Source: Oculina patagonica (taxonomy: Eukaryota). From it: 64,000 nt of DNA. The notes under the pieces are model-generated. The model did not search any database. It was not told where the DNA came from and was given only the letters and a program-made list of their open reading frames with translations. Below, piece after piece: positions 14,461 through 57,958 of the stretch. The number at the start of each line of letters is the position of its first letter. Position 1 is the stretch's first letter. The translations under genes were made by a program, and so were the position numbers. The stretch covers positions 30,938,001 to 31,002,000 of the forward strand of contig NC_135769.1 in assembly GCF_052425735.1 (NCBI RefSeq), in the 5' to 3' direction.

Positions 14461-17400
14461 ATGTCTTCCCACAGAATGCCCGATCGCTTTGAGCCTTTAA
14501 GTGTTTCAGCTTGGCAGCCTAAAGCTAACAACCCAGCGCGATACTCCCATAGTGAATTAGGGTATTTTTCTATCGACGAAGAGAGGCATTTCTTGCACAA
14601 CAAATCAAAACTCGGGAACTTGAATCTGCCCCAGGACTGCAAAAGACTTGATATAGATTTGAATGCGGGATTTGAACAATGGAGAGAACTACCTAATGTG
14701 CAACAACACCTGGATTCCATGTTGTATTGGATTTTGTTGAACAAGGAACTGTTGACGATAGAAGGGGATTTCCAGGCTAGCACCGATGGAGTGAGGTATA
14801 GCACTCTATTCTTCGTCACTCCCGAACCCTACGACTTACCCTTGTTATTTGTTTTGTTAATTAATTATTTTGCATCACATTAGGTAAAATTGATTTCCCA
14901 GTTCAATTTCCTCCACCTGTGATCTCGCGAAAAATAAGGAACGACTAATCACGCACGCACTGCTGTAAGACGAAACTTGCACAAATGAAAACGCATCCTT
15001 GCAAAAGGGGAGTTAGTGGGGGGGGGGAAGGTTGGGGGAAAAAAAAAAAAAAAAAACGAATGATAACAGAACTGCACTGTAAAAGCGCAAGTTCGATTAC
15101 GCACAAAAGCAGTTTGTATGGGGAAATATAATTTGGTGCCTTAACTTAATTAAGCCCTGGGAAAACTTGCGTCTACTTGCGTCTCCGTTTGGCCAGGACT
15201 TGCGTGCCCTTGGGTTGACTTGCGTTCACTTTGGTCGAGATCTAATTTGCACGCAGGTCAACGCATGTCTTTCACCGTTTTCACCGTTTGGGCACCCAAC
15301 ACAACTCAACAAAATTTTTACTGCAGCGCGTAGCATTTTAAATGGCTTTTTGCAAACTTGCGTGCACTTGCGACTAAACTTGCGTGTCCGTTTGGCCACC
15401 CAACGCAAGCCTATACGCAAGTTCAACTTGCGACAACTTGCGTTATCGTTGGCCAGGGCTTGACTTCCAGAACAAAAGTATCATCCAACGAAAAATGGCG
15501 ACTGCGAGGCTCGACTGTATAATAACTTATTGGGTCCTTATTGGATTGTAAAGGATCGATCGCAGTTTACGATGAACGGGAAGGAGAAGGGTAGTAAGTG
15601 TACATTGACCCTATAACCCAGCCAGTCAAATATGAAGTACTTGTTAAAGGAATACCTGTGTTCAATCCTAGCTCAAAGGTCTCAAAGTGACCCTCTTACC
15701 GGTTTAGTCGTCCTCTCAGCTAAGCGCACAGAACAGTGAGTTCAAAATATTAACTCACCTTTCTAATTACTACATACTCTTCCATCGAGCCGTGTCTAAA
15801 TTAATTAATTAACTAATTATAATATCCAACTAAATTACCTATTTGTACAAGATTATTTCAAAAAAAAAAAACTATAAAAAACTATCTGTATATTAAACTA
15901 TCTATATTACGATTTAAAAGAGCCGAGAGTGGGCTGTGTCTTGCCGCTCAAAGGCAAGCTTTTCCAGAGAAAAGAACCGCGATATTGGAAGCTTCGTTTT
16001 CCTGCTTCAGTGCTCGGTTTAGGGACAAAGAGGTTATATTTTGAATTTCGTAGGTTATTCTTGTAATCTTACTTCGGAGAATGTTTTGCTACATTATGAC
16101 CGTAACAACACTTTGATGACTTTCTAGATCCTTCAATGTCTAAACAAACAATTATGCAAAGTGTCTAGGCCAAGGAGATTTGATGGTCTTTGATGTTTAT
16201 CACTTTTTCCGCCAGGCTTGATGTTGACTTCGTCACATCACGAGGAAACCTTGCCCGCATTCTCAACGTTTTGAGCGGTAAAGACGGAAAAGGGCGCGGA
16301 TGGACTCTGTTGGCCACACGCTACAGAGGAACAGTCTATCTGAGCCATATTGAAGATAACCAGAATGATCAACAGTCTACCTTTGCACGGAGAGTGTGTT
16401 ACTGGGGAAAAAGATTTGAAGTAGAAGTGACGAAAAATAATGCACAAGCAGCCTCAGTCCCAGGTTCTTCATCCGCGCCGCCACCAGCAAACGAGGTTGA
16501 ACGGCATGGTCCTCTCAAGGCTTACCCAGGATTCTTTTCCGTCGTGAAATTTCACCTGGAAAATCACAGGATTGCTTTACGAGCAGAAGTTGACGCAGAA
16601 ATGCAAGTAAGGCGTTTTGTTACAACAGGTTAACGTAGCTTGAAATAACTTGGAAAGTGAAATGCATTTGTTCGATTAGTGTTGTCGGTAGCTACAATGA
16701 CTCTAATGCGATCAGTCTCCCCGCATAAAATAAGGTTATTATGGCTTGAAACCATACCGTAAAACCCGTTATAAGCCCTGGGATTATACAACTTCATAAG
16801 AGATTTTGCGTGGGCATATCACCACTGAAGTATGAAAACTCGTTTGGAATGAGCTGACTAGACACGGCATAAAGGCTATGCCGCTAAGATGGGGAACATA
16901 TTCTAAGAAAGCGACGCTGAGGTACCGTTAAGGGGGGGGGGGGGGGAGGGGGTAATTTCCCCATATCCCAACAACAGGGCCTCTACTCTGATCTGCACCC
17001 TACTTGCAAACTTATCGCGAACGTAAGGAGGTTAATGTGGAAAACCTGGATGGGCGAGGCCTAGCTTCGAGGATAGGGAAGGGGTGTCTAATCGGGATAC
17101 TTTCTTTCGAACAGATCTACTTATAACCAGAAAGAGTTGTAAGGGGGAAGCTTATAACCGGCATTTTACCGCTTTGTGAGTCTGACCTCTTCTTATTTTT
17201 CCCCATTTAAATATTAGAGTTTGGATGATGAGCAAATTTCACGTTCGAACTACGTGGAACTCAAGGTAACTACTGAAACAATTGTTCGTGCACCGTGGGC
17301 CTTTAAACGAAAGCGGTTGGTCCCGTGGTGGTGTCAATCAATCGTGTCAGGCACGCCCCTTATTGTGTACGGTATCAGAGACTACGATGGTCACGTGACA

Positions 17401-18366
17401 AGCATTGAACACGTGAGAACTGACGATATTCCCGAACGTGTCGGGCGAGAAAATCTTGATGCAGAAAAATACCTGATGTTCCTGAATGATGTGCTCTCTT
17501 GGATAAAGAACATCGTGTGTGTGGAAGACACCGCAGCAGTGTACGCATTTCACTGGGATCCAAACGCACCTGGCAGAGGCGTGACATGTAACGCACTATT
17601 GCGTGACCCTGATAACGCATTCTTACCTGAGTGGTACGTGAATGAGATGGAAGAGTATTTCGCGCGTGTGAGTGAGCAAAGGCAAAGAAAAGGAGAGAAG
17701 AGAAAAATGGAAGATGAAACGCAAAGGAATGATCAAGAAATGAAGATGCAAGGTATGCGTAAACGCTTTGAAGCATCGTGGCCAAGAACGGCAGCATTCG
17801 ACGCGGAGCCGAATGCAAGAGAGATGTACGTAAATTATGCCCGCTCAAGATCGTCGGGTGTTCTAGACGTCAGTGATCGCGGGCGATCAACACTAGAAGG
17901 ACGTCGCGATACAGCAAATGAAGAGCGCTACTCAAGAAGGGAATCATTCCAAAGTGGAGAATTCAAGAGAGAGTACTCTAGATCAAGAAGAGAAGACGAT
18001 TTAAGGCGACCTCTACCCACCGATGAACAGTTTTATCGTGATCAAACAAGCACTAGTGGTACCAACCGGCCGTCGCCGCCGTACTCTCATCGCAGCAGGA
18101 GAGACAAAATGGACAAATCAAGGAGATATGAAAGACGACGTCATGAAGATCAAGCCCAACAGCAAGCAAGGGTGCGGACGGAGAAAACCTTTCACGAGTC
18201 ACGTTCACAGAGATTCAGTGACAGATCTAAAGGTTATCCTTCGTCTAGTGATGAACGAATGTCACAGGAATCAAGAGTCAAAAGAGTAAAACGCGATGCA
18301 GAATATGAAGAACACGGCTTTGGTGCCCAGGACTCCAGGAGGCGTGAGTACCCAAACTGGAACTGA
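14461..18366 (+). CDS. DXO: DXO/Dom3Z/Rai1-family decapping and exoribonuclease protein; 3 exons, 624 aa, long charged C-terminal tail
   Basis: Exons 14461-14795, 16216-16606, 17218-18366 (1875 nt, phases 2 and 0). Family motifs: ELGYFS, FVTSRGNL, YWGKRFE, AEVDA, YVELK, WWCQS...G...IVYGIRD, FLPEWY. Confidence 0.9.
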
Positions 18367-18830: not shown

Positions 18831-21695
18831 TTCAAATTACGTAGAATGTATGTTTGGAATAAAACGACTCCAAGTTCGTATGTTCCTCGACCGTTTATGG
18901 GTCAATCGGACGCTTTTGAGGCAAATTTCTCGGTCGCCTTTTATTCGTTTTCAAATCTAGCGATCTCCCATTTGTATTTTTATGTATATATGTCAAAAAC
19001 TTAAAACTATATCCAACAGAGTTTCGTCCCTCTTGCTCTTATTCTTAAGTGGCAAGGAGTTTCTAGTTCGCGAGGCGGAATTTTCTATTTTCCTGGATCC
19101 TCCGTTATCAAAATACAAGTCGACGACAACTCTCAAAGCTGAATTAAACGAGGAAGGCAGGGCGGCCGGCCTGTTTCGATCAGAGCAAGCCGGATGCACT
19201 TTTTGGTAGAACGTTTGTTCCAGAGCACATGTAATTCTCTAATTAAGCTGTCTTTTTTTTTTTCATTTCTTCGTGAACACAAGAACATTTTCTGCGCCGC
19301 GATCCTTGACTTTTTTTACGTATACTGATCATAACTGTCTATTCACGCCTTCACCTTCACTTGTCTCTAGAAAGCTATTTACTTACTTTTACAGCAGCAA
19401 ATCAGAGCTGAGATTGAAATGCGTGGGACTGAAACGAGCTTCATGGTGGGTGTATATTATTATTGTGTGTTTTAGGTCTGCTGTTTTAATTTTTTTTTTC
19501 ATCAGTTTTAATTACCTTCGACCACGTTTTGCATATTATTTTAATATTTTTCTGAAAGTGCGACAATTGCATAATCTTTTCCAACATGACAACAAATTCG
19601 ATCGGTCTCTCGCGTCGACTCACAAATAAAACAAAACAAAAGAAGACACAACCATAACCGTAACAACCGCACCGTCAAACATTGCGCTAGTATCAAGAAT
19701 AAAGTATCAAGAATTTCGTCCAAAAATCGTTGAACGAAAGTTATTCCAAAGCAAAAAGAAAACAGACTTAAAATGAATAGGACCCTTTTTTCCGACATGA
19801 TGTCTTCGATTTTGTCGGCACTTAATTAATATTTTGACATTTGAGTCAAAATAAAGTCGTCCCGAGTAAACTCGCGTCGAAGCGCGCAGGGCAGGGCTGG
19901 CCTTGGTGTCAGGGTAACCCTATCAGCCTTGTGAACACGTCGCTGAAATACAAGAAGAAAAGTTTAATGGCTTTTATATAACGTATCAAAATTGCCTAAC
20001 GTTAAAGCAAATCACACATTACAACATCACGCCAGTTAAAAATACGGCAAAAAGAGAGTCCAACGGCGGTGAAAAAATCCGAAACAAGAGCTGAAAGGGA
20101 AAAAATATCAATTAATGAAACAAAAATAAAGGAAATACTGTATTATAGAAGTTTTTGTTTTTCATATTCGCGCCCGCGCATCAATATTCCAGACCTCCAA
20201 CAGTTAACATCTATCACGTCCGCGCTCGATCACACAATCGACAGCACCAAACGGAGTCATAATTTCACAATTAGTAATTGTCACCGGAGTCGTAATTCTC
20301 ACACAACAGTAATTTTCACCGTTATTGTAAAATTATAAATTTTTCTGTACAGTTAGCCTGCTTGCAGGGGTACCCAATCGATGTTCATGTACGCGGGGGC
20401 TTCGGGGAGCCTACCATGCAGTCAAACATAAATAAGACAAGAGTTTAAACAAAAGATAAAAACGAATATATTGCCTCTAGGTATGAATTGCGGTTAGCCA
20501 CACAACAGAGCTAATTACGTAAGCATACTGCCTGTAGCCCATGCTGATTACGTATTTTGGAACGCTGTACAGTTGAGTCCCGATATTATCGATTAAACTC
20601 GCCCTACAATAACTCGAACCTTCCGCTAACTCGAGCCTTTTTCCATTGCCCTCCAGGTCATTTTCCTACGAATTTTACCCTCGGTAACTCGACCCTTTTT
20701 CGATTTTCCCTGGAGGTTCAAGTTATTTATCAGGATACAACTCATGTATGTCACAGCCAACTGACTGTAGGCGGAAAAATCTCATTGAAAACCTGTTTAT
20801 CAATTGTCTTGTTGTGCCTTTGTTTTTCCCGGTTATGTCTTATTAGTTGTTCATTCATACGGCCTTGGTTTACTTTTTCTAGAAAATACATCACCTCAAG
20901 AAAAAAATTATCAGCCAAAATATCACTCATCTTCAGTCGGACTTTCCGTCAAGAGTTTTAAGTACACTTGACATATCATAAAAAACAAGCCGGTCCGATA
21001 TCGGATTTATTACAGGGCTGACAATGAAATAAAAAAAGGTTTACCAAAATGGTAAACTTTCCAATCACTTTTATAATTATTTTTCAATATCCAACTCCTT
21101 GTTCCAAATTGAACTTTTTGACGCATAAATTAACTGATATCAATTCAAAACGCGTTATTATATAAAGAGGTGTCAAAGTACGCACACCTACAGGCACTCG
21201 TCGCCTAGCAACTGTCAAATACCGTTCCATACAAATTGATGTGAATTGTCTTGCTTTACTCCAGCAGTGTCCAAGTTTGGTTGCGATGGAGTTAAATCTG
21301 AGACGTCAGCCAACAACATTGTGGGCTCCTCACTGCCTGTATTTATAGACGAAAGCGTTTTTCGATAGGATCATGCCAACGGCGAAGTGCATCGACAAGT
21401 GGACATCTTGGTTGCTATATACTAAACTACATTTACTTAAAAGCTGACTGCAATTTGCAAGCGACTGTCCTTGCACGCGCAGTTTTAATTTAGATTTCCG
21501 TTGGATAAATTTGTTTCATAAACTCTAGATTTCAACAGTGATAACGACACGCAGTATTTTGCTAACAGTACAATCTGACCTACATAACTGCTAGTATTCA
21601 GTTCCGGTGCCGGGCTTTTTTCGGATCACAACAAACCGATCGAATACACTCGTGAGTTCATTTCAGTGTATTACTTTAAATTCGATTTTCACGCA

Positions 21696-24600
21696 ATGGC
21701 TGTCGACGAATGTTCCGAAGGGACACTTTTGTTGCCATTTCTGGACGAATCTGGTTGGAATCAAGGATTAAGAACGTTTATCTATTTGATAGCGCTTTTA
21801 TGGTGCTTTATGGGAATTGCTATCGTCGCCGACCTTTTCATGTGCGCAATCGAAACAATTACAAGTAAAACGAAAGAAGTCAAGGTGGCAAAACAAGACG
21901 ACCCAACACAAGTAGAAGTCGTAGAAATTCGAGTTTGGAACGACACTGTCGCTAACCTGACATTAATGGCCCTGGGCTCGTCAGCACCGGAGATTTTACT
22001 AGCGATCATTGAGATCGTTATACTAAATAAATTTGAAGCTGGGGCACTTGGGCCCAGCACGATCGTTGGTTCGGCGGCGTTCAATCTTCTCGTGATCACT
22101 GGGGTTTGTGTTATGAGTATTCCAATGCACGAACAGCGAAGAATCAAAGCGATCAAGGTATTCGCGGTGACTGCATCGTTCTCAATGTTAGCCTATATTT
22201 GGCTCTACATCGCCTTGAGTGTGAGCTCCAAGGACGTGATCGAATTGTGGGAGGCAATTTTAACTTTCCTTCTGTTTCCGATTTTGGTTGTTATCGCATA
22301 CATGGCTGATAAAGAATACTGCTGCCCTGGGAAAGTAAGGCCTCAAGATAATGGAGTCCTCGAGCTCGGTATGTACCGCTACTGTTAAATATACCTAACA
22401 AGCACCATGTCAGTATACGTGAATTTAGTTTCAGGAAAGTGCTATATATAGATCGCAATGTTGACCTTACATTTTCTACGTGATAACATTTCACAAAATG
22501 TCGCGAGTAACCTAAGATTGGTAATTTAAAACTTTGTTTTCGTCCGGTTTGAGGACAAAATAAAAGGTTAACTCGTTTTAATGTTTTGACTCCCTCCGCT
22601 AAATTTGTTGCTAAGATTCGAAGTGAGAAATACACCCGTTGCTGTGGAAGATAAAACAAATTGCCATCATTTTTCATTCCCATCGAAATCTGTTTTATTC
22701 TTCAACTTCGTGATATAAATTAGTAACAAAATTTTATGTTTTGGATATCAGCCCGTTTCTACGTGCAAACTAGAAGACAAAACAGAAATTACCAGAAATC
22801 CTTTTTACCCGGTTGCTAACATGACTACGTCAAGTGAAAATTGTTCAGCTGCGCTTTGAGGTAAAAGGGGATCATTAACATATTACGAATATTGCTACGT
22901 TGGAGACCGTTAATTTTTGTGATCGAATACTAAAATAAAATCATCTTCTGGGATTAGAATTTAATAAAAGATTTCCCCCTGTATTTCGGTGTAATTTTAA
23001 TTTGGTAGACGACTCCCTGGCCACTGCATCCGCTGTGACGATTGTTTCGAAGTTAACAATTATTGCTGTAATAGTTATTCCTCTAGGCAAGTTATTACAA
23101 TCCACAGTAGATACATAGCAACTGGCAGATGTATAAGTGTTGAATATTTCTAATGTTTTGCAAATGCGATTTTTTGGTAAACATGCAAATTTGGTGTAAG
23201 ATTAACTGATTAGAAGCAAAAAATAACTTTAAGCTCGTTTTGGATAAGTGTGGTGTATATATTAATTATCTAAAACAAAATAAAATCAAGACATTCATTT
23301 TCGTTGAGGCAATCAAAATAATCCCGGCTTTTTATCTTTTTATACATGTATCATGGACAGCGTTTTGCAATTTTCAGTGGCTTTCAACGGGAAAAACAGA
23401 CATTGACAAGCTGTCAATTAAACAATGTCAGGTTTATATTGTTAATTGCATCCATCCCTCCTCCAATAAATGCCCGCAATTTATTTGCATGTTAATTATT
23501 TTCCGAACAGGAGCTTAATTTAAATGTTAACTATTTCTGCAGGTGCTTGCATTCAGTTATGTTTGTAAATCCTATTTCCCTTTTCAACTGCATATGTATC
23601 ATATCCTACTATATTGTAATTTAAGACTTGCAGTTTTGTTTTATGTTTTATGTAAGTGAATGGATTTGAAGTTTTTAGGGCTATTGTAGGAAAGAACTTT
23701 TTTTTCAAAAAAGTGTCATATTTTTAATATAATTTTTTATTGAAGAGCCTAACTGCAAGATTTGTCTTGGATGATGAATCTCGATGTTTCAAAAGACAGC
23801 AGACTATTTAGTAGCCTGCGTTGCAGACGAAAAAAAACCCTGGTTATATGTTCGTCTGCAACGCAGGCTAACTATTTAGGCTAAGTGATACATTTTACTT
23901 AATGTAACTTTTATGAATATTTACTAAATAAATATACGAGACAGTTTAAAAAAGTGGGAGTGAGTTAAATACAATTTCTTAAATATGGACAATATATTAT
24001 AAAAAAAAAAACATGTTCATAGTCTTTTTTTATTTTTATACATTTCCAAATTTTTAATTTGACGCAGGCTTAGATTGTGCAAAACTTTACAATCATGTCC
24101 AATTAGTTGAGTGCAAAGCTATGACTGATATCCAATCTTAATCTTCCAATTATATATTTGCATAAAAAATAATAAATATGACTACTTCAGCCAAATTAGG
24201 GGAACTTAACTTTTCTGTAATAATTTTATAGAATCATGTATTATGGAATAACATTGATGTATTGAACTGACAGTATTCAGTAGTCAAACTACCAATCTTG
24301 TTAAGGGAAATAACTGACTTCAAAATTGATTAATTCTGATTAAATGAATTACTTCAGTGGTGTGGTAGGAAAAGGTGGTTTTTAATTATCGATAACTGAA
24401 AACAATTAACTTCTTGGAAGGAAATGGTGTGGTCTATAACATGTTCTTTGCAAGTGCATGATATTAATTTTTTTTATCAAAGTTAGAAAAAGGTATTTTT
24501 AGAGAGGCACACATATACAATTGTTTACACAGGGCACAGAGGAGTCAAGTTTGTCCGCAGTTCAAAATCTCTACCGTGCAAAATGACCTTCTAAAGCTTT

Positions 24601-43500: not shown

Positions 43501-44153
43501 CACTTGGGGACCTATGATGCTGGCCTACGTTATGGGGGAATAAATTATTGCAGAAAGATAAAACCTTGCATACCCAGCGGCTGTAACTCGGCATCACAGA
43601 TGGTAAAACTGTTGCATGATATTTTGCCAAAAAGGTGAAACAGCTCTCCTGTTGAGCTTTTAAGAAAATCTCTCTCACCAACAAATTGCATAAGAACGGT
43701 TAAGATGGCAGAAAAAGCCTCCTTTCTTTCATCGTCAAACTCTTCCTGGTGTGAAACAAGAGTTGTGTAGACAGAGGACAGATCACCAGATTTAGAGTGT
43801 TTCTGTTGCATGATCCTTGCCATGAGTCGTACCAGATCAGTTGGAATATTAGGAGAAACATTCAGTGTGCGTTCACATTCGATTTTATGATCCTTCCACG
43901 CGCTCTTTTGACATTCTCGGTTACAGTATCGCGCAAACTTGCAGTTTGAGCAGCGCTGAAGTTCCTCGCTCTTGGCAAAACACAAGTCGCAACATTGCCC
44001 ACGAACACTGTTACTCAAAACAAATACCAAAGGAATAGATTCAAGAACTTTGTCGCCAGGTGTGAATGGTTTCAAAGCTCTTAATCCTCGTCCTTTTAAC
44101 TCCCCAGAGTCAAAAACCTCGAAAACCTCTTCACGAGGTTTCAAGTCCGCCAT
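40584..44153 (-). CDS. SMYD3: SET and MYND domain lysine methyltransferase, SMYD3-like; 4 exons, 477 aa
   Basis: Exons (-): 43574-44153, 42571-42876, 41674-42033, 40584-40771 (1434 nt). KGRGLRA S-sequence, MYND CDLC...RCSNCKFARYCNRECQKSAWKDHKIEC, NSFTI, SLLNHSCLPNC, ELTISY, post-SET YMFDCNCSKC, TPR-like C-terminus (HPSVGIQLFRIGKL...LKVTHG). Confidence 0.92.
40915..41150 (+). mobile_element. RTE-clade LINE 3' end remnant in SMYD3 intron 3
   Basis: Decayed translation ...KEREHLRFKTWSKAEVLARHRVAWRR... is typical of the RTE ORF C-terminus; followed by a (GAT)n tail. Confidence 0.65.
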
Positions 44154-47300: not shown

Positions 47301-50300
47301 TTTTCGGTTAAAAGTACTAAAATTGGCCTGGCCAATAGCTCATCTTGTACATGAAATGCACCTAGTACATCCATTCAGTAAATTGTTGTTGAAGAAAAAA
47401 GGGAGCCATAAAAATTTAAGCAAACTGTTAATTAAAAGTAATTTGAAACAAAATTCAAAATATATTCCATGAGTCGCTGTGTGCAAAGAATAAACAAGGA
47501 GAAAAAGTGTCTGCTCAGCGAGGCAAACTTATTTTCACTAAATGGCATGAAAAAAGAGACATTTCTTTTTTATCAACCAATGTTTTGCCGAGCGAAGCCC
47601 CGCGCAATGTGCAACGAAGAAAGAACGGGCGAAATATCAATATCGAGAAGCCCCGTGTTGCTGATGTTTACACGGCAAACATGGGTGGCGTTGACCGAGC
47701 TGACCAGCTTCGCTCGTTTTATTTTGCTCGTTATTCCTCCCGAAAATGGTACAGGTACATTTTTTGGTTTTTATTCAACCGTTCAGTCTGCAATGGGTTC
47801 ATTCTCGAATCAATTTCTCGTACTTCCCGAGGAAAAAGAAAGCGCCCGATGATCAGCTTTAGGCTTGATCTGGCGAAACAACTAATCAATGGTTTCAGCC
47901 AAAGAAAAAGAAAGCGAAGATCTCAGGAGACTCAAAATCCTTCTGACTTTTTCAAGTTGAGATCTAACGTTCCTGATGGCATCACAATGATATCACTTGT
48001 TTATCGCTTCAGCACACTTGCATGGTGATTTCTAACAAAGTTGGACCACTACTTGTAGTTTCCATATATCTTTAGGCTCTTGTAATGAGTTTTTGAAGTG
48101 AAACTGGTGATAGTGTCCCTTTAATTGATGTAAAGAGAATAGGACTGTCAGTGCCAATTTTTGTTAGCATTTTAAAATACATGAACAACATAAATTGGAA
48201 TGGGTTGTTTTGTAGAGCATTGCAAACTGCAAAATCCATATTCCCTGGAAAAGTGTCAATTGATTTGATGTTTGGACGACCACAGCAAACACTTGATGAG
48301 TGGCATAAGGAGTTATCACAGGTGTGTAGAATTAGGACTTCACATTTGAGGGAAATTGAAATTTTAAAATGTTAGCTTCAAACTGGCGATATCATCATCA
48401 TAATCATCGTCATCATCATTATCATCATCATCATCATCATCGCCATTATCATCATGGTTATTTTTAATTATGATAATTATTTTTGATTATGATAATTAAT
48501 TTTAATACTTGTCTGCCAGGCATTATCTGTGTGTGATGATCATGTCTCATTATATCAGCTGACCCTTGAAAGGGGTACACCACTTTATAAGAGTGTCAAG
48601 TCAGGAAAATTGGTGAGGTGACTACTAAAATAAAAATTTAAATTTTTAGTATATTTAATTATCTCTTAATATGCAGTTAATGTTTATTTGTGGCAGTCAC
48701 TCCCTGATCCAGATGTAGTAGCAGAAATGTATCAGTTGGCTGTGGAGGTAATTGATGAACTCTTTGTGAGACATTTGATTGTATACTTTAGACTGTCTAG
48801 TACATGACTGTACTTTTAAGGGTTGTTCTAAAACCCAGAATGCTAGAAACCTGGTATACCGGAAATCCAGAAGAGAAGGCCCGGAATCCTAACACACGGA
48901 ATGACCTTTTTTATGTATGCCTTATCAAGATAAATACCAGGAAATATGTTATATTTTTGGGAAATTGGAAACTTTGTTACGAAGTTGCCAATTATGTTAC
49001 AAAAAAATCTAGTTTAGTGTTCTACGTCAAACAAATTTAATTTTTGACGAGTTTGGCTCAATTTCCTCTGGCAGTTGAAATGCTTCATTGATTTTGTTAG
49101 ACCATGTGATTGGTTTTTCTTGTCAAATGGACTTAATTCTAGTTTAAAATAACAAAAAAAAATGTTATTTAATTAATTTTATACCATGATTATTAATTTG
49201 CTGTTCTTAACTTCAAATTTTACTTCATCACTAGACTTTGATTGCAAATGGATTTCATAGATATGAAGTTGCAAACTTCGCAAAACCAGTAAGCAGAGTT
49301 TGATTGATGGCGCATGATATATTATTTTCTTAAAACAACTTGTTCACAATCTCTAAAGTAACATTCTTCATCTTTTTAGTGCAGAATGCACTTTTGTGGT
49401 GGTTTGGTGGGCAGTCGTCTGCTAACCCCCTCAAGCGCTAAAGCACTATATAGTGTAAACTTTCAATCAGCAATTAGTTATTATAATTAATATCAATTAA
49501 TTAATTATTATTTGTGGAGGGGGTAGGGGGTGGGGAGCACCTGACCGTATGCCCTAGGTAAAACGTGGGCCATATCTACTTTACCTACATATTATGAAGA
49601 TTTCAAAGGTATATATTTGTTTCAGAAAACCCTTTGCTCTCCTTGTGGTATCATTCTTTCTAGAGTAAAGTACTTTGCACCAAACGCATGCGCATATCTA
49701 CATTACTTTCATGTGAAGATTTCAAACCTAGATATTTGTTTCAGAAGACCTTTTGCTCTCCTTGTGGTACTATTCTTTTGATAGCAAAGTACTTTGCGCC
49801 AAACACATGCACAGATTCGACTATGTTTTATTCTCAGGAACATTGCGTGCATCGCGCGTTTGCAGTAGGATTCCTTCAGACTCCGTGATGCCAAGTTAAA
49901 ACCGCAAATTAACTAAAGTAGATTTTGAGACTTTCACAGCAGCTTCGTAATTAAGAATGCAAAAACTTGCTCCGTGATTTTCAGCACGAAACCCCTAATA
50001 AGCAGGAAACAAATATCCAAGCTGTAACGCACTTTTAAAAACCTTTCGAAAGAGATGGGTTTTTTTATGTTCTTTTAATTAGTTTTCGAAAAACGTCTTT
50101 TGAGCAGTTAACCGCAACTTAATTAAATTAAAGTGAAAAATTGGCTTAATTATTGAAAACAAAACAGCTGCCATCGATGTCACGTAAAGAAAACAAAAGT
50201 ATCATGTTACAGCATTTGCAAGGAAAACAAGTGTCTTGTTACAAGCAAATAACAATCGTGTTACGGTTGAAAAGATAAGAGTACTAAGGAACTCCTGGGA

Positions 50301-54400: not shown

Positions 54401-55186
54401 ATATATGGTAAGAATTACTTGTACTAAACCTACTGTCTGATGTTCATTATTTCTAGGTTGAAGCAAGAGGTCATGCAACTAGAAAACAAGTACCACAAGC
54501 AAAACTTGAAATGTAAGTTTAAAAAATAGCACTTTTTTAATACCAATATATACTGGTTCAGTATATAATGTGTTTGATATTTGACATGACTTTAATTTAT
54601 TGCATATATTATCTATGAGGTGGGATAAAATGGGGGACTTAAAACTGGGGGTGGGGGGGGGGAGCTGAAAAACTAAATTGAGCATTGTCTAATTAATACT
54701 ATTCTTTACAATTTTTTTCTTGAATTTATCACAGATTGGAAGAAGTTCTCATGCTAAGTCTTAGAACTGCTGATGGTCTTAGTAATGAGGTACTAATAAA
54801 TAATTATGCCAATAGTCTTGAGACAGTACCTTTTTTCTGTTTTGTGCAGGGTTGCATGTCATCGTTGATTTGAAAGCTATTGAGTATATTATTTTGACAT
54901 GTGATTTTTGTTTCTTTGCACAGAAGTGGAAGAGCTTGTCTCCACTTGGCGTGTCACTGTATGATGCATTTAAAGATAATAACGATGTTCAAGATCTCAC
55001 ACAGTCTGGCCTTCTGTTATTGACTGAAAAGTAGGTCTTTTTAATACAACATCATAAAACAAATATTGATGTAATGTATATGAAATGATTCATATATGAA
55101 CTGCGGATGTATATGAAAGTGATAAATGATCGTCGCAGTGAATTTCCAATATAAGCAATTGGCTAAAGAAGCCTGAAAAAAATTCA

Positions 55187-55220
<34 letters not shown>

Positions 55221-55614
55221 GATACCGGTGCGATGCTCTACCAACGAGCTATTGAAGCCACACATTGGGAGCGAGGTCAATTGAGTTATATTTTCCCGCG
55301 AGAGGAGTGAAATGATGTAATGTATATGAAATGATTCAATAGAACTGCGGATGTATATGAAAGTGATAAATGATCGTCGCAGTGAATTTCCAATATAAGC
55401 AATTGGATAAAGAAGCCTGAAAAAAAATGCTTATATTGGAAATTCACTGCGACGATCATTTATCACTTTCATATACATCCGCAGTTCATATATGAATCAT
55501 TTCATATACATTACATCATTTCACTCCTCTCGCGGGAAAAATAATATGAACCACAATTGACCTCGCTCCCAATGTGTGGCTCAATAGCTCAGTTGGTAGA
55601 GCATCGCACCGGAC

Positions 55615-55648
<34 letters not shown>

Positions 55649-57958
55649 TGAATTTTTTTTCAGGCTTCTTTAGCAATTGCTTATATTGGAAATTCACTGC
55701 GACGATCATTTATCACTTTCAAAACAAATATTGCAGTAACATTTTTGAAGTTCCATAGACCATCTTGACATATGTTTGGACACAAAATTAATTGAGGGGC
55801 GTATTGGGCCCTATTAGAAACCGCAAAACCGAACAAAAAATCATCAAAAATCGCAAAACCGCACACAAAAATTCAAATTTCAAAACATTAACCTTATCCT
55901 ATTGACACCTGAAAAAAGGTTTTTCTTATACACTTTTGGCATTTCTGTTCAGCTACAATCTAAATCATTCTACTGAAGCGAGATTGCATTTGATCAGGAA
56001 ACCAAACGGGAAAAACCGAAAACCACATCGAATACCAAATCTAAAAAAAAACGCTTGCATTGTAGCCGAAAACCGAAAACCAAATGCCAAGAGAAGAAAA
56101 ACCCACAAACTGCATAAGACACCAAAACCGAAAAACCGGCAGTTTTTCGGGTCGAAAACCAAAAACCGAAAACCGATCTAATCCCATTGCCCCCCCCCCC
56201 CCTCCATGGTTGTTGTTGTTGTTGTTGTTGTTTGTCAACATGCTCAGAGTCTATACAGTCAACTCTCTCTAAGACGGACACTTTCGGGACCAGCCACAGC
56301 TGTCCGTCTTAGAGAGGTGTCCGCCTTGTAGAGAGTGGAGGTAACATGACACCAGTAATTCTGAGATAATAAAGCTAAACCTTTGCATAACGCAACAAAC
56401 CTTTGCTTACTGCAACAAGACTAAAATAATAAAAGGACCGTATTTGCTTGTTAAAGCAAAAATTGAGAGGTTCTACAAACTGTAATACTGTAAGTAGAAA
56501 CGACCTCTTTAGTGTCCATACACGTAAGCAGAGAAGTAACCCGTTAGAACGTCATTGTTAGGGGTATCAAATGGTCTTTGCGAGCATTTGCGAGCATGCG
56601 AGCACAGCGTTTTTCTTTGCTAGCACGAGCATTGACAAAAATAAGCCTTGCGAGCAACGAGCACTTTTCAAGAAGCTACTCCAACAAAAATCGAGCATGC
56701 GAGCACTTGTAAAAATGTGCGAGCACGAGCAAACGAGCACCCACTAAAATGTTGCGAGCATTTCGAGCAAAAGCTTAATTTTGCGAGCACTGCGACATTT
56801 TGAGGGACCATTCATGACCCATATTGTTTTTCTTTATTAAGCTTGGTATACACGTATCCTTAGGGCGCTTTAGGTCCATAGGAAGTTTGGAAGTATTTTC
56901 ACTAATAAAACATGATAAAAAAAACACTTCTCAAGTGTCCGTTAATGATTTCAAAGTGTCCGTTGTCCGTCTTAGAGAGGTGTCCGTCTTATGGGGAGTT
57001 TGGTTACAGTAAAAAGACTGAAAAACGGCAGGGACCATGACCAGGTGTCTGTCTTAAGGAGGTGTCCGTTTCATAGAGGTGTAAGTTAAAAAAAGAGTTG
57101 ACTGTAATAATGTTTACGGCTTGTTCGTACTAAAATTGCATAATTGCGGGCCCAAGAGAGGCCCGCAATCCTAATCTTGACAGTGACCAGCGGATTGCGT
57201 ATTCGCGTGCGCGCCACGTTTATAAAGGCTATCGCAAACCGGAAGTTGAAAATTTTTTCTTCCACTAAGAACGATCGGAAGCAAAAATGTGTCAATCACG
57301 ACATGTCGTAACACCGGAAGAGAAAATCTTGTCTCCAAGAGCGAAAGAATGCGAAAAATCAACAGTTTGTCACATTGATCGAGGCCTTCTTCAGACATTT
57401 TGCAGACGTTGTTTTATAGGTGTTGCTTTTGAGAAGATCTGCTGTGATTGTATCACAGATAACTACGGCAAGCGATGATTCCAACAACGGTTATTCTCGA
57501 GAAATTCCTTATAACACTGACAACAAAGCGAGTTTGCCGACGGAGGAAAATCACATCTCAATTCACACCACGTGCTCAACTACACTTCGCAAAACTGTCA
57601 ATCAAAAAAACAACTCTGATTGGTTCGCGGCAATAGGAAACGATAAAAAACATTCGTGACTTAAGCGTGACGCGTTACTCGACCTTACTCGGAATAATTT
57701 TCGTTTGTCCAGTAATTAAAAAACACTTCCCTCCCAGTACCTTCTCTTCACTGCATCGAGGCCCGCACTTTCTTACCTGTGGTTACCACTAGTAAAATCC
57801 TCTTTTTTATTATTATTTTCAGAGGTATCAAAGCCACCTACAAGGGTTTGTTCGTACTGGACAGTATTGTTCCAACATTGTTACTGCATCTTGAAAAGTT
57901 GGTTACGACTTCATCGAATACAGAAGGAGATCAACAAACGCTTAATTTTGAAAAATAG
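44370..57958 (+). CDS. RSAD1: Radical SAM domain-containing protein 1 (HemW-like heme chaperone), probably mitochondrial; 16 exons, ~466 aa
   Basis: Exons 44370-44555, 45695-45747, 46306-46412, 46506-46638, 46885-46930, 47125-47186, 48216-48321, 48520-48612, 48697-48747, 49235-49288, 52096-52172, 52786-52864, 54457-54512, 54735-54789, 54924-55030, 57823-57958 (1401 nt, phases consistent). [20 protein letters not shown] (CxxxCxxC), [39 protein letters not shown], HemW-type [16 protein letters not shown]. Start codon is the first in-frame ATG and is less certain. Confidence 0.92.
44607..44793. repeat. (TTGA/CTGA)n tetranucleotide microsatellite
   Basis: Directly visible. Confidence 0.95.
44797..45606. 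mobile_element. PIF/Harbinger-type non-autonomous element
   Basis: GGGCCGAATCGCACTAGAGCCAGACA / TGTCTGGCTCTAGTGTGATTCGGCCC with CAA on both flanks. Confidence 0.85.
47273..48120. mobile_element. Kolobok-type MITE (TTAA TSD, AG...CT ends) containing a piggyBac transposase fragment
   Basis: TTAA|AGGGACACT...AGTGTCCCT|TTAA. Related empty, decayed copies at ~28205-28603 (+) and ~33455-33731 (-). Confidence 0.75.
47470..47935 (+). pseudogene. piggyBac (PGBD4-like) transposase C-terminal fragment
   Basis: [13 protein letters not shown]...[27 protein letters not shown]...[13 protein letters not shown]...[10 protein letters not shown] matches the region around the third catalytic Asp of piggyBac transposases. 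No N-terminal half and no piggyBac TIRs. Confidence 0.88.
48388..48455. repeat. (CAT)n microsatellite; another at 60860-60920
   Basis: Directly visible. Confidence 0.9.
49595..49810. repeat. Two ~120-bp tandem direct repeats
   Basis: GAAGATTTCAAA...ATATTTGTTTCAGAA...TTTGCTCTCCTTGTGGTA...AAAGTACTTTGC.CCAAAC occurs twice. Confidence 0.85.
50527..50695. mobile_element. Foldback Tc1/mariner-type MITE
   Basis: ~73-bp arms CAGCAAGGCGCCCAAAAGTGTGACCAC... / ...GTGGTCACACTTTTGGGCGCCTTGCTA, with TA flanks. Confidence 0.85.
55069..55720. mobile_element. Inverted, partially tandem ~250-bp tRNA-like retro-insertion with 13-bp TSD
   Basis: AAAACAAATATTG at 55056-55068 and 55721-55733. Left half (55069-55427) and right half (55428-55720) are opposite-orientation permuted units. 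Confidence 0.9.
55188..55259 (-). pseudogene. tRNA-like cloverleaf (pseudo-Thr GGT) inside the repeat; second copy 55578-55647 (+)
   Basis: Acceptor GGCTTCA/TGAAGCC, D arm GCTC/GAGC, loop CCGGTAT, T arm ACGGG-TTCGAAT-CCCGT. C33 and a GGT anticodon are atypical of functional eukaryotic tRNAs. Confidence 0.75.
55795..56204. mobile_element. AAAACCG-repeat-rich MITE-like element
   Basis: GAGGGG...CCCCTC ends with numerous AAAACCG(A/C) internal repeats; no clear TSD. Confidence 0.5.
56256..57104. mobile_element. Tc1/pogo-type MITE with nested CGAGCA MITE
   Basis: TA|CAGTCAACTCT...AGAGTTGACTG|TA with GTGTCCGTCTTA repeats; nested element at ~56559-56822. Confidence 0.8.
57143..57793 (+). mobile_element. 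Helentron/HINE-like element
   Basis: 5' hairpin TTGCGGGCC-CAAGAGA-GGCCCGCAA, 3' subTIR GGCCCGCA (57760-57767), stem-loop GTGGTTACCAC, CTAGT end. Confidence 0.6.

Follow-up and report, generated by a model that had tools for sequence, protein, structure and literature searches.

What kind of sequence places tRNA look-alikes on both strands within a few hundred nucleotides of each other, and how does it reach its site? The question is raised by a 64,000-nucleotide stretch of DNA from Oculina patagonica (contig NC_135769.1, positions 30,938,001 to 31,002,000; hereafter the window, whose own numbering is used below), which contains a 652-bp insert composed of two opposed arms. An earlier description made from the letters alone (hereafter the sequence-only reading) had taken the insert for an undescribed retroelement. 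We find that it is a genuine copy, inserted fairly recently, of a non-coding coral retroelement that is abundant and carries a tRNA look-alike. As a whole explanation, we favour a young non-coding, tRNA-bearing family that is moved in trans by the reverse transcriptase (RT) and GIY-YIG endonuclease of Penelope-like elements (PLEs), and we give this reading a probability of roughly 0.78; there is good support for the mechanism class itself, in which a non-coding passenger moves by Penelope-type retrotransposition.

As the reference for positions within the repeating unit, we used 55425–55674 of the window, 250 nt in tRNA sense, in which the tRNA-like part occupies positions 154–224 and a hairpin with a T-run positions 225–241. 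The copy in the window is laid out as follows.

55056–55068, no strand: left copy of the target-site duplication, AAAACAAATATTG; its last 2 nt (TG) could also be assigned to the element end
55069–55427, minus strand: arm of ~1.45 units; outer (3′) terminus at unit position 94, the 'tail-bearing' end
55172–55188, minus strand: hairpin with a T7 run, immediately past the 3′ end of the tRNA-like part; resembles a terminator of RNA polymerase III (Pol III) and is conserved in the family
55187–55258, minus strand: tRNA-like cloverleaf of 72 nt, from tRNA-Thr (ARAGORN); 1-nt D-loop deletion relative to the family
55420–55427, no strand: head-to-head inner junction; 3-nt overlap of the arms (AAA), a microhomology
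55425–55720, plus strand: arm of ~1.19 units; outer (3′) terminus at unit position 47, the 'tail-less' end
55578–55648, plus strand: tRNA-like cloverleaf of 71 nt (ARAGORN); 2-nt anticodon-loop deletion and 1-nt acceptor-stem deletion
55648–55664, plus strand: hairpin with a T8 run, immediately past the 3′ end of the tRNA-like part
55721–55733, no strand: right copy of the 13-bp target-site duplication, AAAACAAATATTG; its first A is ambiguous with the element end

The insert thus occupies 55069–55720 (652 bp) between exact 13-bp duplications. A repeat finder gave direct periods of 244–250 bp and an arm-to-arm complementarity of 91–100%. The tRNA-sense 3′ ends of both arms point outward, and neither a poly-A nor a microsatellite tail is present. 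The inner end of the minus arm lies inside the A-run at 55420–55427; the inner ends correspond to unit positions 228 (minus arm) and 1 (plus arm), and the junction is therefore not palindromic. Much of what the sequence-only reading had described is borne out here, namely the coordinates of the insert and its duplication, the two opposed arms (given there as ~1.45 and ~1.17 units with a period of ~246–250 bp) and the tail-less, outward-facing 3′ ends, the last two features being seen in the family as well. The same reading had spoken of an intact tRNA mimic. That is the norm of the family, in which the module is 74 nt long, whereas the two cloverleaves of the window, which Rfam scores as tRNA with 44 and 47 bits, are slightly damaged by small deletions (71–72 nt).

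As an independent assessment of the insertion, we compared contigs of public sequencing runs with the window segment 54700–56100. Position 55055 is followed immediately by 55721 in two contigs from a related coral (run X9), whose shorter side measures 103 nt, and likewise in one divergent contig of the coral metagenome run X2. These empty-site contigs omit exactly 665 bp (652 + 13); 13–16 letters match both sides, and the 13-mer is present once. Because the related coral has the empty site, the 13-bp duplication of the window is a real insertion scar and not a chance repeat. Another contig of run X2 crosses the filled left junction with one mismatch. An allelic empty site was looked for in the assembly, and none was found. 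The window copy is a minor, older-looking variant that has 94–96% identity to the main family. Its two arms differ from each other by ~11 single-base insertions or deletions and only 2 substitutions, a pattern that the other family loci do not show, and several of these changes sit in the tRNA-like part (acceptor stem, D loop and anticodon loop). They could be due to long-read assembly error in an inverted repeat or to error-prone cDNA synthesis.

How large is the family? In the species' own 529-Mb genome, a search returned 1326 candidate places, 40 of which were scored and gave 173 matches at ~94% identity. A 30-mer spanning the T-arm and the trailer matched the genome 643 times at ≤2 mismatches (329 forward, 314 reverse). 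The anatomy described below rests on ~60 independent loci of a family with at least 643 units. A typical unit measures 251 nt, of which 74 nt form the tRNA-like part. The number of units per arm ranges from 0.05 to 17, with most of the larger arms at 1.2–5; the longest arrays have 17 units (locus L057) and 12.4 + 3.6 units in two arms (L058), and ARAGORN labels 17 'tRNA-Thr' genes in one array. A 22-mer of the unit 3′ end had no match in metagenome contigs of the Joint Genome Institute (JGI).

Some loci deserve separate mention. L063 and L064 (G000:C1:18033342 and 18040961) are 7.6 kb apart and have identical flanks and ends; this is a segmental duplication that carries the element, not two separate insertions. 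One family copy (L053:1535–2143) is nested in the RT frame (open reading frame L053:1685–3700) of a gypsy-like element that has an RVT_1 match (2.5e-39) and a PNMA-type gag upstream, and this frame stays open through the plus arm. We considered this RT frame as a PLE and rejected it, as it belongs to the gypsy-like element hosting the inserted copy. Close to family copies lie additional tRNA-like sequences (L046:16–89 and L062:737–809) whose acceptor and anticodon arms are different; they may be further tRNA-bearing repeat families or tRNA pseudogenes.

To what extent do the ends of the copies follow rules? Every two-armed copy among the ~60 loci has the minus arm followed by the plus arm, with the tRNA-sense 3′ ends outward, and paired matches of the 30-mer repeat this head-to-head order genome-wide. 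The outer ends are confined to two narrow intervals of the unit, positions 45–53 (...ATCACTCTCA, ~47) and 92–102 (...CATTACATCA, ~94). All 29 duplication-flanked two-armed copies combine one ~47 end with one ~94 end, an outcome that would have a chance of ~2 × 10⁻⁹ under free choice, and the one-of-each rule is independent of which arm is longer. The sequence-only reading had noted that the ends of the window copy fall at different points of the unit. They do differ, and they are not arbitrary; they are the two canonical termini, 94 and 47, of the family. The position of the inner ends is variable and, in most copies, not the same in the two arms. The arms join with an overlap of 0–13 nt or else mostly with a few filler bases (up to ~40, once ~160). 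A snap-back origin, in which a hairpin primes its own copying, was rejected as a general rule, since the inner ends of the two arms usually lie at different unit positions.

The apparent duplications of the 29 copies are 13 bp (15 copies), 12 bp (7), 14 bp (4), 15 bp (2) and 9 bp (1) long. The family does carry duplications, whose genome-wide absence the sequence-only reading had said would refute its proposal; in these copies they are mostly of 12–15 bp, with a mode of 13. Typically 2–5 nt of the duplication are ambiguous with the element ends (range 1–5 nt), an overlap that indicates microhomology at priming. One-armed copies use either terminus and have a variable 5′ end, and truncated ones among them are still flanked by duplications (13 bp in L047, 15 bp in L043 and 10 bp in both L007 and L055). 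None of the family copies has a poly-A or microsatellite tail, and no repeats were found at their ends. Taken together, the fixed 3′ ends, the variable 5′ ends, the microhomology and the duplications on truncated one-ended copies indicate that the family inserts by target-primed reverse transcription rather than by cut-and-paste. Target-primed movement of a non-coding element, as proposed earlier for the window, has thus gained support from the termini, the variable inner junctions, the duplications on single-arm truncated copies and the empty site.

The 5′ ends of the one-armed copies are clustered at unit positions 128–148, 223–241 and 250/1; as a speculation, the first cluster could mark a start site and the second a weak rU:dA hairpin region. 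Within the first, 9 of 24 one-armed copies begin 6–26 nt upstream of the tRNA-like part. The sequence-only reading had placed the tRNA in the middle of the unit, unlike the head position seen in short interspersed nuclear elements (SINEs). Measured from the fixed 3′ ends, the commonest single-arm 5′ ends make the tRNA head-proximal, as in SINEs, and the claim does not hold. Beside the termini, we noticed a perfect 12-nt palindrome, TTCATATATGAA, at unit positions 61–72 (window 55485–55496) with CATATACAT on both flanks. It lies inside the 47-nt tail described below, between the two priming sites, and may have a role in template dimerisation or in the choice of the priming site.

Two explanations other than Penelope-type movement bear directly on these termini. 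The first is a foldback or miniature inverted-repeat transposable element (MITE)-type DNA transposon, whose inverted repeats would consist of tandem subrepeats and whose transposase would cut and paste it with a ~13-bp duplication. The inverted arms with defined outer ends (TGA... to ...TCA), the narrow distribution of duplication lengths and the number of units per arm, which varies as in Foldback elements, would agree with it. However, no copy has two like termini (47 versus 94); duplications persist on copies that have a single arm and a variable inner end (L047, L043); each duplication shares 2–5 nt with the ends of the element, as would happen in primed synthesis; and no coding partner with the family's ends was present among the loci seen. 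We know of no DNA-transposon superfamily that makes 12–15-bp duplications. Uniform ends defined by terminal inverted repeats, which the sequence-only reading had named as the sign of a DNA transposon, are not what we observed, as the termini differ in 29 of 29 copies and one-ended copies carry duplications. We regard this explanation as extremely improbable.

The second is an ordinary tRNA-derived SINE moved by a long interspersed nuclear element (LINE) with an apurinic-type (APE) or restriction-enzyme-like (RLE) endonuclease, its arms arising by L1-style twin priming and its tandems by later unequal crossing-over. L1 twin priming, attributed to Ostertag and Kazazian in 2001, is said to produce two cDNAs from the ends of a staggered break, which are joined head-to-head by microhomology. 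Several features are compatible with a SINE: the A and B boxes of the tRNA-like head are intact, the 3′ ends are fixed, 9 of 24 single-arm copies begin just upstream of the tRNA, monomer copies shorter than a unit occur (L011:258–465, L062 and L071), and the duplications of 12–15 bp fall inside the L1 range. Yet L1 twin priming starts the inverted arm at an internal, variable position, so that one end only is the true 3′ end, whereas in the family both outer ends are specific template sites, one of each in 29 of 29 cases. Further, most copies are multi-unit, even the very young ones; a T7–8 run follows the tRNA; poly-A, microsatellite and LINE-like tails are lacking (a LINE match was not searched for); and the one-sided 47-nt tail is a PLE hallmark. 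The sequence-only reading had held that fixed 5′ starts at the tRNA and a common tail would reveal an ordinary SINE. Both signs are present in part, as the copies share a tail and show a preference for starts close to the tRNA; in its other features the element does not have the anatomy of an ordinary LINE-dependent SINE. We consider this explanation quite improbable.

Which machinery, then, leaves such ends? PLE insertions are known for partial tandems (pseudo-long terminal repeats, pLTRs) and for an adjacent inverted, 5′-truncated copy that forms inverted repeats, and they also show a 'tail' at one end only, short duplications and 5′ junctions mediated by microhomology (PMC8557442, PMC3846280). 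The family has a 'tail' of 47 nt (unit positions 48–94), likewise at one end only. A Pfam search of the genome for GIY-YIG gave 860 candidates, and all 150 that were scored were positive. These copies form at least 22 head-to-head (−,+) pairs 0.5–7 kb apart, as against one (+,−) pair. At least 10 have identical, uninterrupted frames of 1371 amino acids (e.g. C3:1323294, C5:25727195 and C12:33422650) and look like very young, possibly active PLEs. No PLE was found within the window or in the family loci that we fetched. The Penelope-type inverted geometry suggested earlier for the window copy is reinforced by the one-sided tail and by the abundance of head-to-head GIY-YIG PLEs.

To examine the origin of the multimers, we compared units within and between insertions. 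The differences had a median of 1 nt per 251 nt within an insertion, mostly in T-run length, and of 5 between insertions. In most cases private variants recur in every unit of an insertion and on both of its arms; L015 has five of them, and L046, L040, L011 and L057/L058 have others. Because these private variants are common to all units of an insertion, the simplest reading suggests that each concatemer was copied from one monomer-type template, which would be a circular RNA or a monomer used in repeated end-to-end template jumps. Reiterated copying of a monomer-type template is also the model proposed for retrozymes (PMC7229834), and the sequence-only reading had likened the partial tandems to templates read as concatemers or circles.

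The same insertion mechanism might instead have acted on long linear multi-unit transcripts, or the arrays might have expanded after insertion. In L050, where each arm has four tRNAs, the variant 43G>A (the 'Ile' unit) occurs in a single unit at the same register of both arms; the long arrays (17 and 12 + 3.6 units) share a variant; and RNA contigs place the element inside longer transcripts. These observations would be compatible with a linear multimer. On the other hand, the private variants are mostly in every unit, so that the linear source would itself need to be homogeneous, and the units of young insertions differ mostly in T-run length only. We consider linear multimers or later expansion a possible, although less likely, origin of the arrays.

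What does the tRNA-like module contribute? The typical tRNA-like part scores 52.9 bits as an Rfam tRNA and has intact, canonical A and B boxes (TAGCTCAGTTGG and GGTTCGAATCC) and a perfect acceptor stem of 7–8 bp, together with C33, an A31–C39 mismatch and the anticodon GGU. With these features it is best regarded as a derivative of tRNA-Thr, not as a working tRNA. A genuine array of tRNA genes was ruled out by C33, the A31–C39 mismatch, GGU, the duplications and the empty site. A T7–8 run begins 5 nt after the tRNA-like part and is kept both in the family and in a diverged relative (L036:3181–3420), which has the loop CUAGUAU (U33, AGU), the T7 hairpin and compensatory changes at the acceptor pair 5–68 and the anticodon-stem pair 28–42. 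The density of template-borne variants is 0.008 in the tRNA-like part (0.005 without one polymorphic loop site) and 0.005 in the T-run hairpin, as against 0.010–0.017 elsewhere in the unit. This lowest variant density, found despite the 7 CpGs that the tRNA-like part holds, and the compensatory changes in the relative suggest, as a pattern in the sequences, that the module may be kept by selection on propagating copies.

The sequence-only reading had also assigned the module a part in Pol III transcription of the template. This is doubtful, because the T7–8 run directly downstream should terminate Pol III, and we consider a SINE-like Pol III template unlikely. Its other proposed part, the cutting of concatemers by RNase P/Z, gains no support from the termini, since among the loci examined none fell at the tRNA borders 153/154 and 226/227, the RNase P/Z sites. 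The unit RNA is predicted to be strongly structured (−71.7 kcal/mol, z = −5.1), and its minimum-energy fold has a leader segment (~104–140) base-paired to the tRNA-like part, in the 3′ half of the latter.

Retrozymes are non-coding units defined by a type I hammerhead, and the unit might be a true retrozyme whose self-cleaving motif is missed by current models, with unit-length RNA released by this ribozyme and circularised by RtcB, and with an incidental tRNA-like part. The 250-nt unit equals in size those of Acropora millepora retrozymes, 225/245 nt (PMC7229834), and the strong predicted structure and the clustering of 5′ ends at 128–148, 223–241 and 250/1 could be read in the same way. The searches, however, gave no ribozyme family. 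At E ≤ 10 in Rfam, on both strands of the window copy and of the typical unit or its trimer, only tRNA was credible, as was the case at the gathering threshold over 20 loci; nor did inspection of both strands of the window copy and the typical unit reveal a CUGANGA core. Matches of the window copy to Rfam miRNA families were rejected as artefacts of the long inverted repeat. The hammerhead is thus missing, as the sequence-only reading had stated, and an overlooked ribozyme is very improbable.

These elements can be arranged in a working scheme. The unit of 250–251 nt has four parts, namely the 74-nt tRNA-Thr look-alike, the T7–8 hairpin, a body and, on the 3′ side, a region that offers two alternative priming sites; the RT and GIY-YIG endonuclease of a candidate PLE helper would mobilise it in trans. 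A staggered cut gives rise to the 12–15-bp duplication, both exposed target 3′ ends bear element sequence, with 1–5 nt of microhomology at the fixed outer ends, 94 and 47, and the arms meet head-to-head at a variable point through microhomology or a few filler bases. Each arm would be a cDNA primed on tRNA-sense RNA, its units being made at the time of insertion by rolling round a circular RNA or by end-to-end template jumps on a monomer. The tRNA-like module may serve as a Pol III promoter or a processing signal, or may be a captured tRNA gene that is kept for other reasons.

A more specific version of this scheme is a counterpart of retrozymes that has no ribozyme. In it, the tRNA look-alike would recruit host Pol III factors, RNase P/Z, or the splicing endonuclease and RtcB to produce unit-length, possibly circular RNA. 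A dimeric Penelope-type RT/endonuclease would copy this RNA in repeated rounds, with two starting points that are fixed, lie 47 nt from each other and serve one side of the break each. We offer this version tentatively and consider it unlikely in its entirety; if true, it would explain the one-of-each rule seen in 29 of 29 copies and would make PLE integration testable with a 250-nt substrate.

Is the family present in RNA as well? Contigs of the poly(A) RNA run X17 show that it is. In this run the depth was 0 in the intron bins beside the window insert, ~120 in the neighbouring exon and 10⁴–9 × 10⁴ in the element bins, figures that come from contigs of a single poly(A) library, which cannot give levels, ends or circles. 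The depth peaks over the tRNA part, at 3–6 times that of the rest of the unit, in contigs summed over families, and this excess is only suggestive.

The same run places the insert in a host gene through the following feature.

54922–55030, plus strand: host coding exon, from a spliced mRNA contig of run X17 with a GT..AG joint 54787->54922

Since the spliced contig sets the exon at 54922–55030, the element lies in an intron, and the insertion is 25–38 nt past the GT 5′ splice site at 55031. The insertion site is bracketed by a G-run, TGGGGGTGGGGGGGGGG, and, at a distance of 1.5 kb from it, an inverted counterpart in the form of a C-run (54646–54662 and 56189–56206). To the right of the insert, 55800–56180 is dense in short repeats of the AAAACCGAAAACC type and has a contig depth ~10 times that of single-copy sequence in DNA runs; this stretch is probably another repeat family in the same intron. 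Elsewhere the window holds host gene pieces, with an RAI1-like nuclease domain, a Na/Ca exchanger domain and a MYND zinc finger, and a tandem repeat (119-bp x 1.8), at positions 17221–18366, 21666–22388, 43545–44153 and 49595–49810.

Several points weigh against movement by PLEs as the whole explanation. The assignment draws on insertion geometry and not on unit sequence shared with a PLE. A tRNA-sense template is likewise deduced from geometry only, and Arkhipova et al. argue that PLEs may use antisense templates (PMC3846280). The arrays could also grow after insertion by unequal exchange, the T7–8 run that should stop Pol III makes a promoter role doubtful, and the RNA evidence consists of contigs from one poly(A) library only. 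Finally, PLE pLTRs and animal retrozymes normally carry hammerheads, and the family is without one. Naiad-type PLEs, however, also lack hammerheads (PMC8557442) and have been reported in Acropora millepora (preprint 10.64898/2026.07.22.740005), so that a hammerhead-free passenger is unsurprising.

How does the family compare with known systems? It resembles EN+ PLEs of the Penelope/Poseidon, Neptune and Naiad types, together with their solo-pLTR or captured-sequence derivatives, in its partial tandems, its inverted 5′-truncated head-to-head copy, its short duplications and its junction microhomology (PMC3846280, PMC8557442), and hundreds of GIY-YIG copies in the same genome show its geometry. 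The optional tail of PLEs, also at one end, is 30–40 bp in the literature (PMC3846280, PMC8557442) as against 47 nt here, and the duplications of 12–15 bp are longer than the 8–10 bp reported for PLEs in Adineta vaga. Unlike PLEs, the family has no open reading frame and no hammerhead; the 250-nt unit, with its tRNA-like Pol III-type module, is the whole element.

Metazoan non-LTR (non-long-terminal-repeat) retrozymes are similar in their non-coding tandem unit of 170–400 nt, their range from dimers to long multimers, their duplications of >4 bp, their presumed dependence on PLEs and, in Acropora-type corals, their nearly identical unit length (PMC7229834; 10.64898/2026.07.22.740005). They differ in the defining type I hammerhead, in place of which the family has a tRNA-like cloverleaf and a T-run. 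The family resembles tRNA-derived SINEs in that its copies carry A and B boxes in a tRNA part close to the preferred 5′ end, stop at defined 3′ ends, may be truncated at the 5′ end and are flanked by duplications. Unlike them, it has a strong T-run after the tRNA part, no LINE-type, poly-A or microsatellite tail, two alternative termini with one per end, and copies that are multimeric, both tandem and inverted, from the outset. Cassandra, Helenus and Ajax are also non-autonomous and carry a Pol III module resembling a small-RNA gene in the terminal repeat unit, but these are LTR/integrase elements with 4–6-bp duplications (PMC10886601), in contrast to the PLE-type target-primed insertion of the family. 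In the full-text literature we found nothing on tRNA-like modules in PLEs or animal retrozymes, the repeat catalogues Repbase and Dfam lying outside this search. The family joins the insertion mechanics of PLEs with a retrozyme-like tandem non-coding unit, and it lacks the hammerhead that defines retrozymes and, of the features of SINEs, a body free of Pol III terminators and a LINE-type tail.

For genome annotation, these results mean that copies of the family are easily mislabelled as tRNA genes, satellites or MITEs. For the biology of PLEs, whose integration is still unsolved and whose tandem and inverted copies and one-sided tail are called undefined in origin in the literature, a minimal, very young, high-copy family of 250-nt units with near-perfectly regular PLE scars is a natural reporter of the integration mechanism. 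It would be the first Penelope-dependent element, among those that we could find, to have a Pol III-type tRNA module instead of a hammerhead, and would link the concepts of the SINE and the retrozyme.

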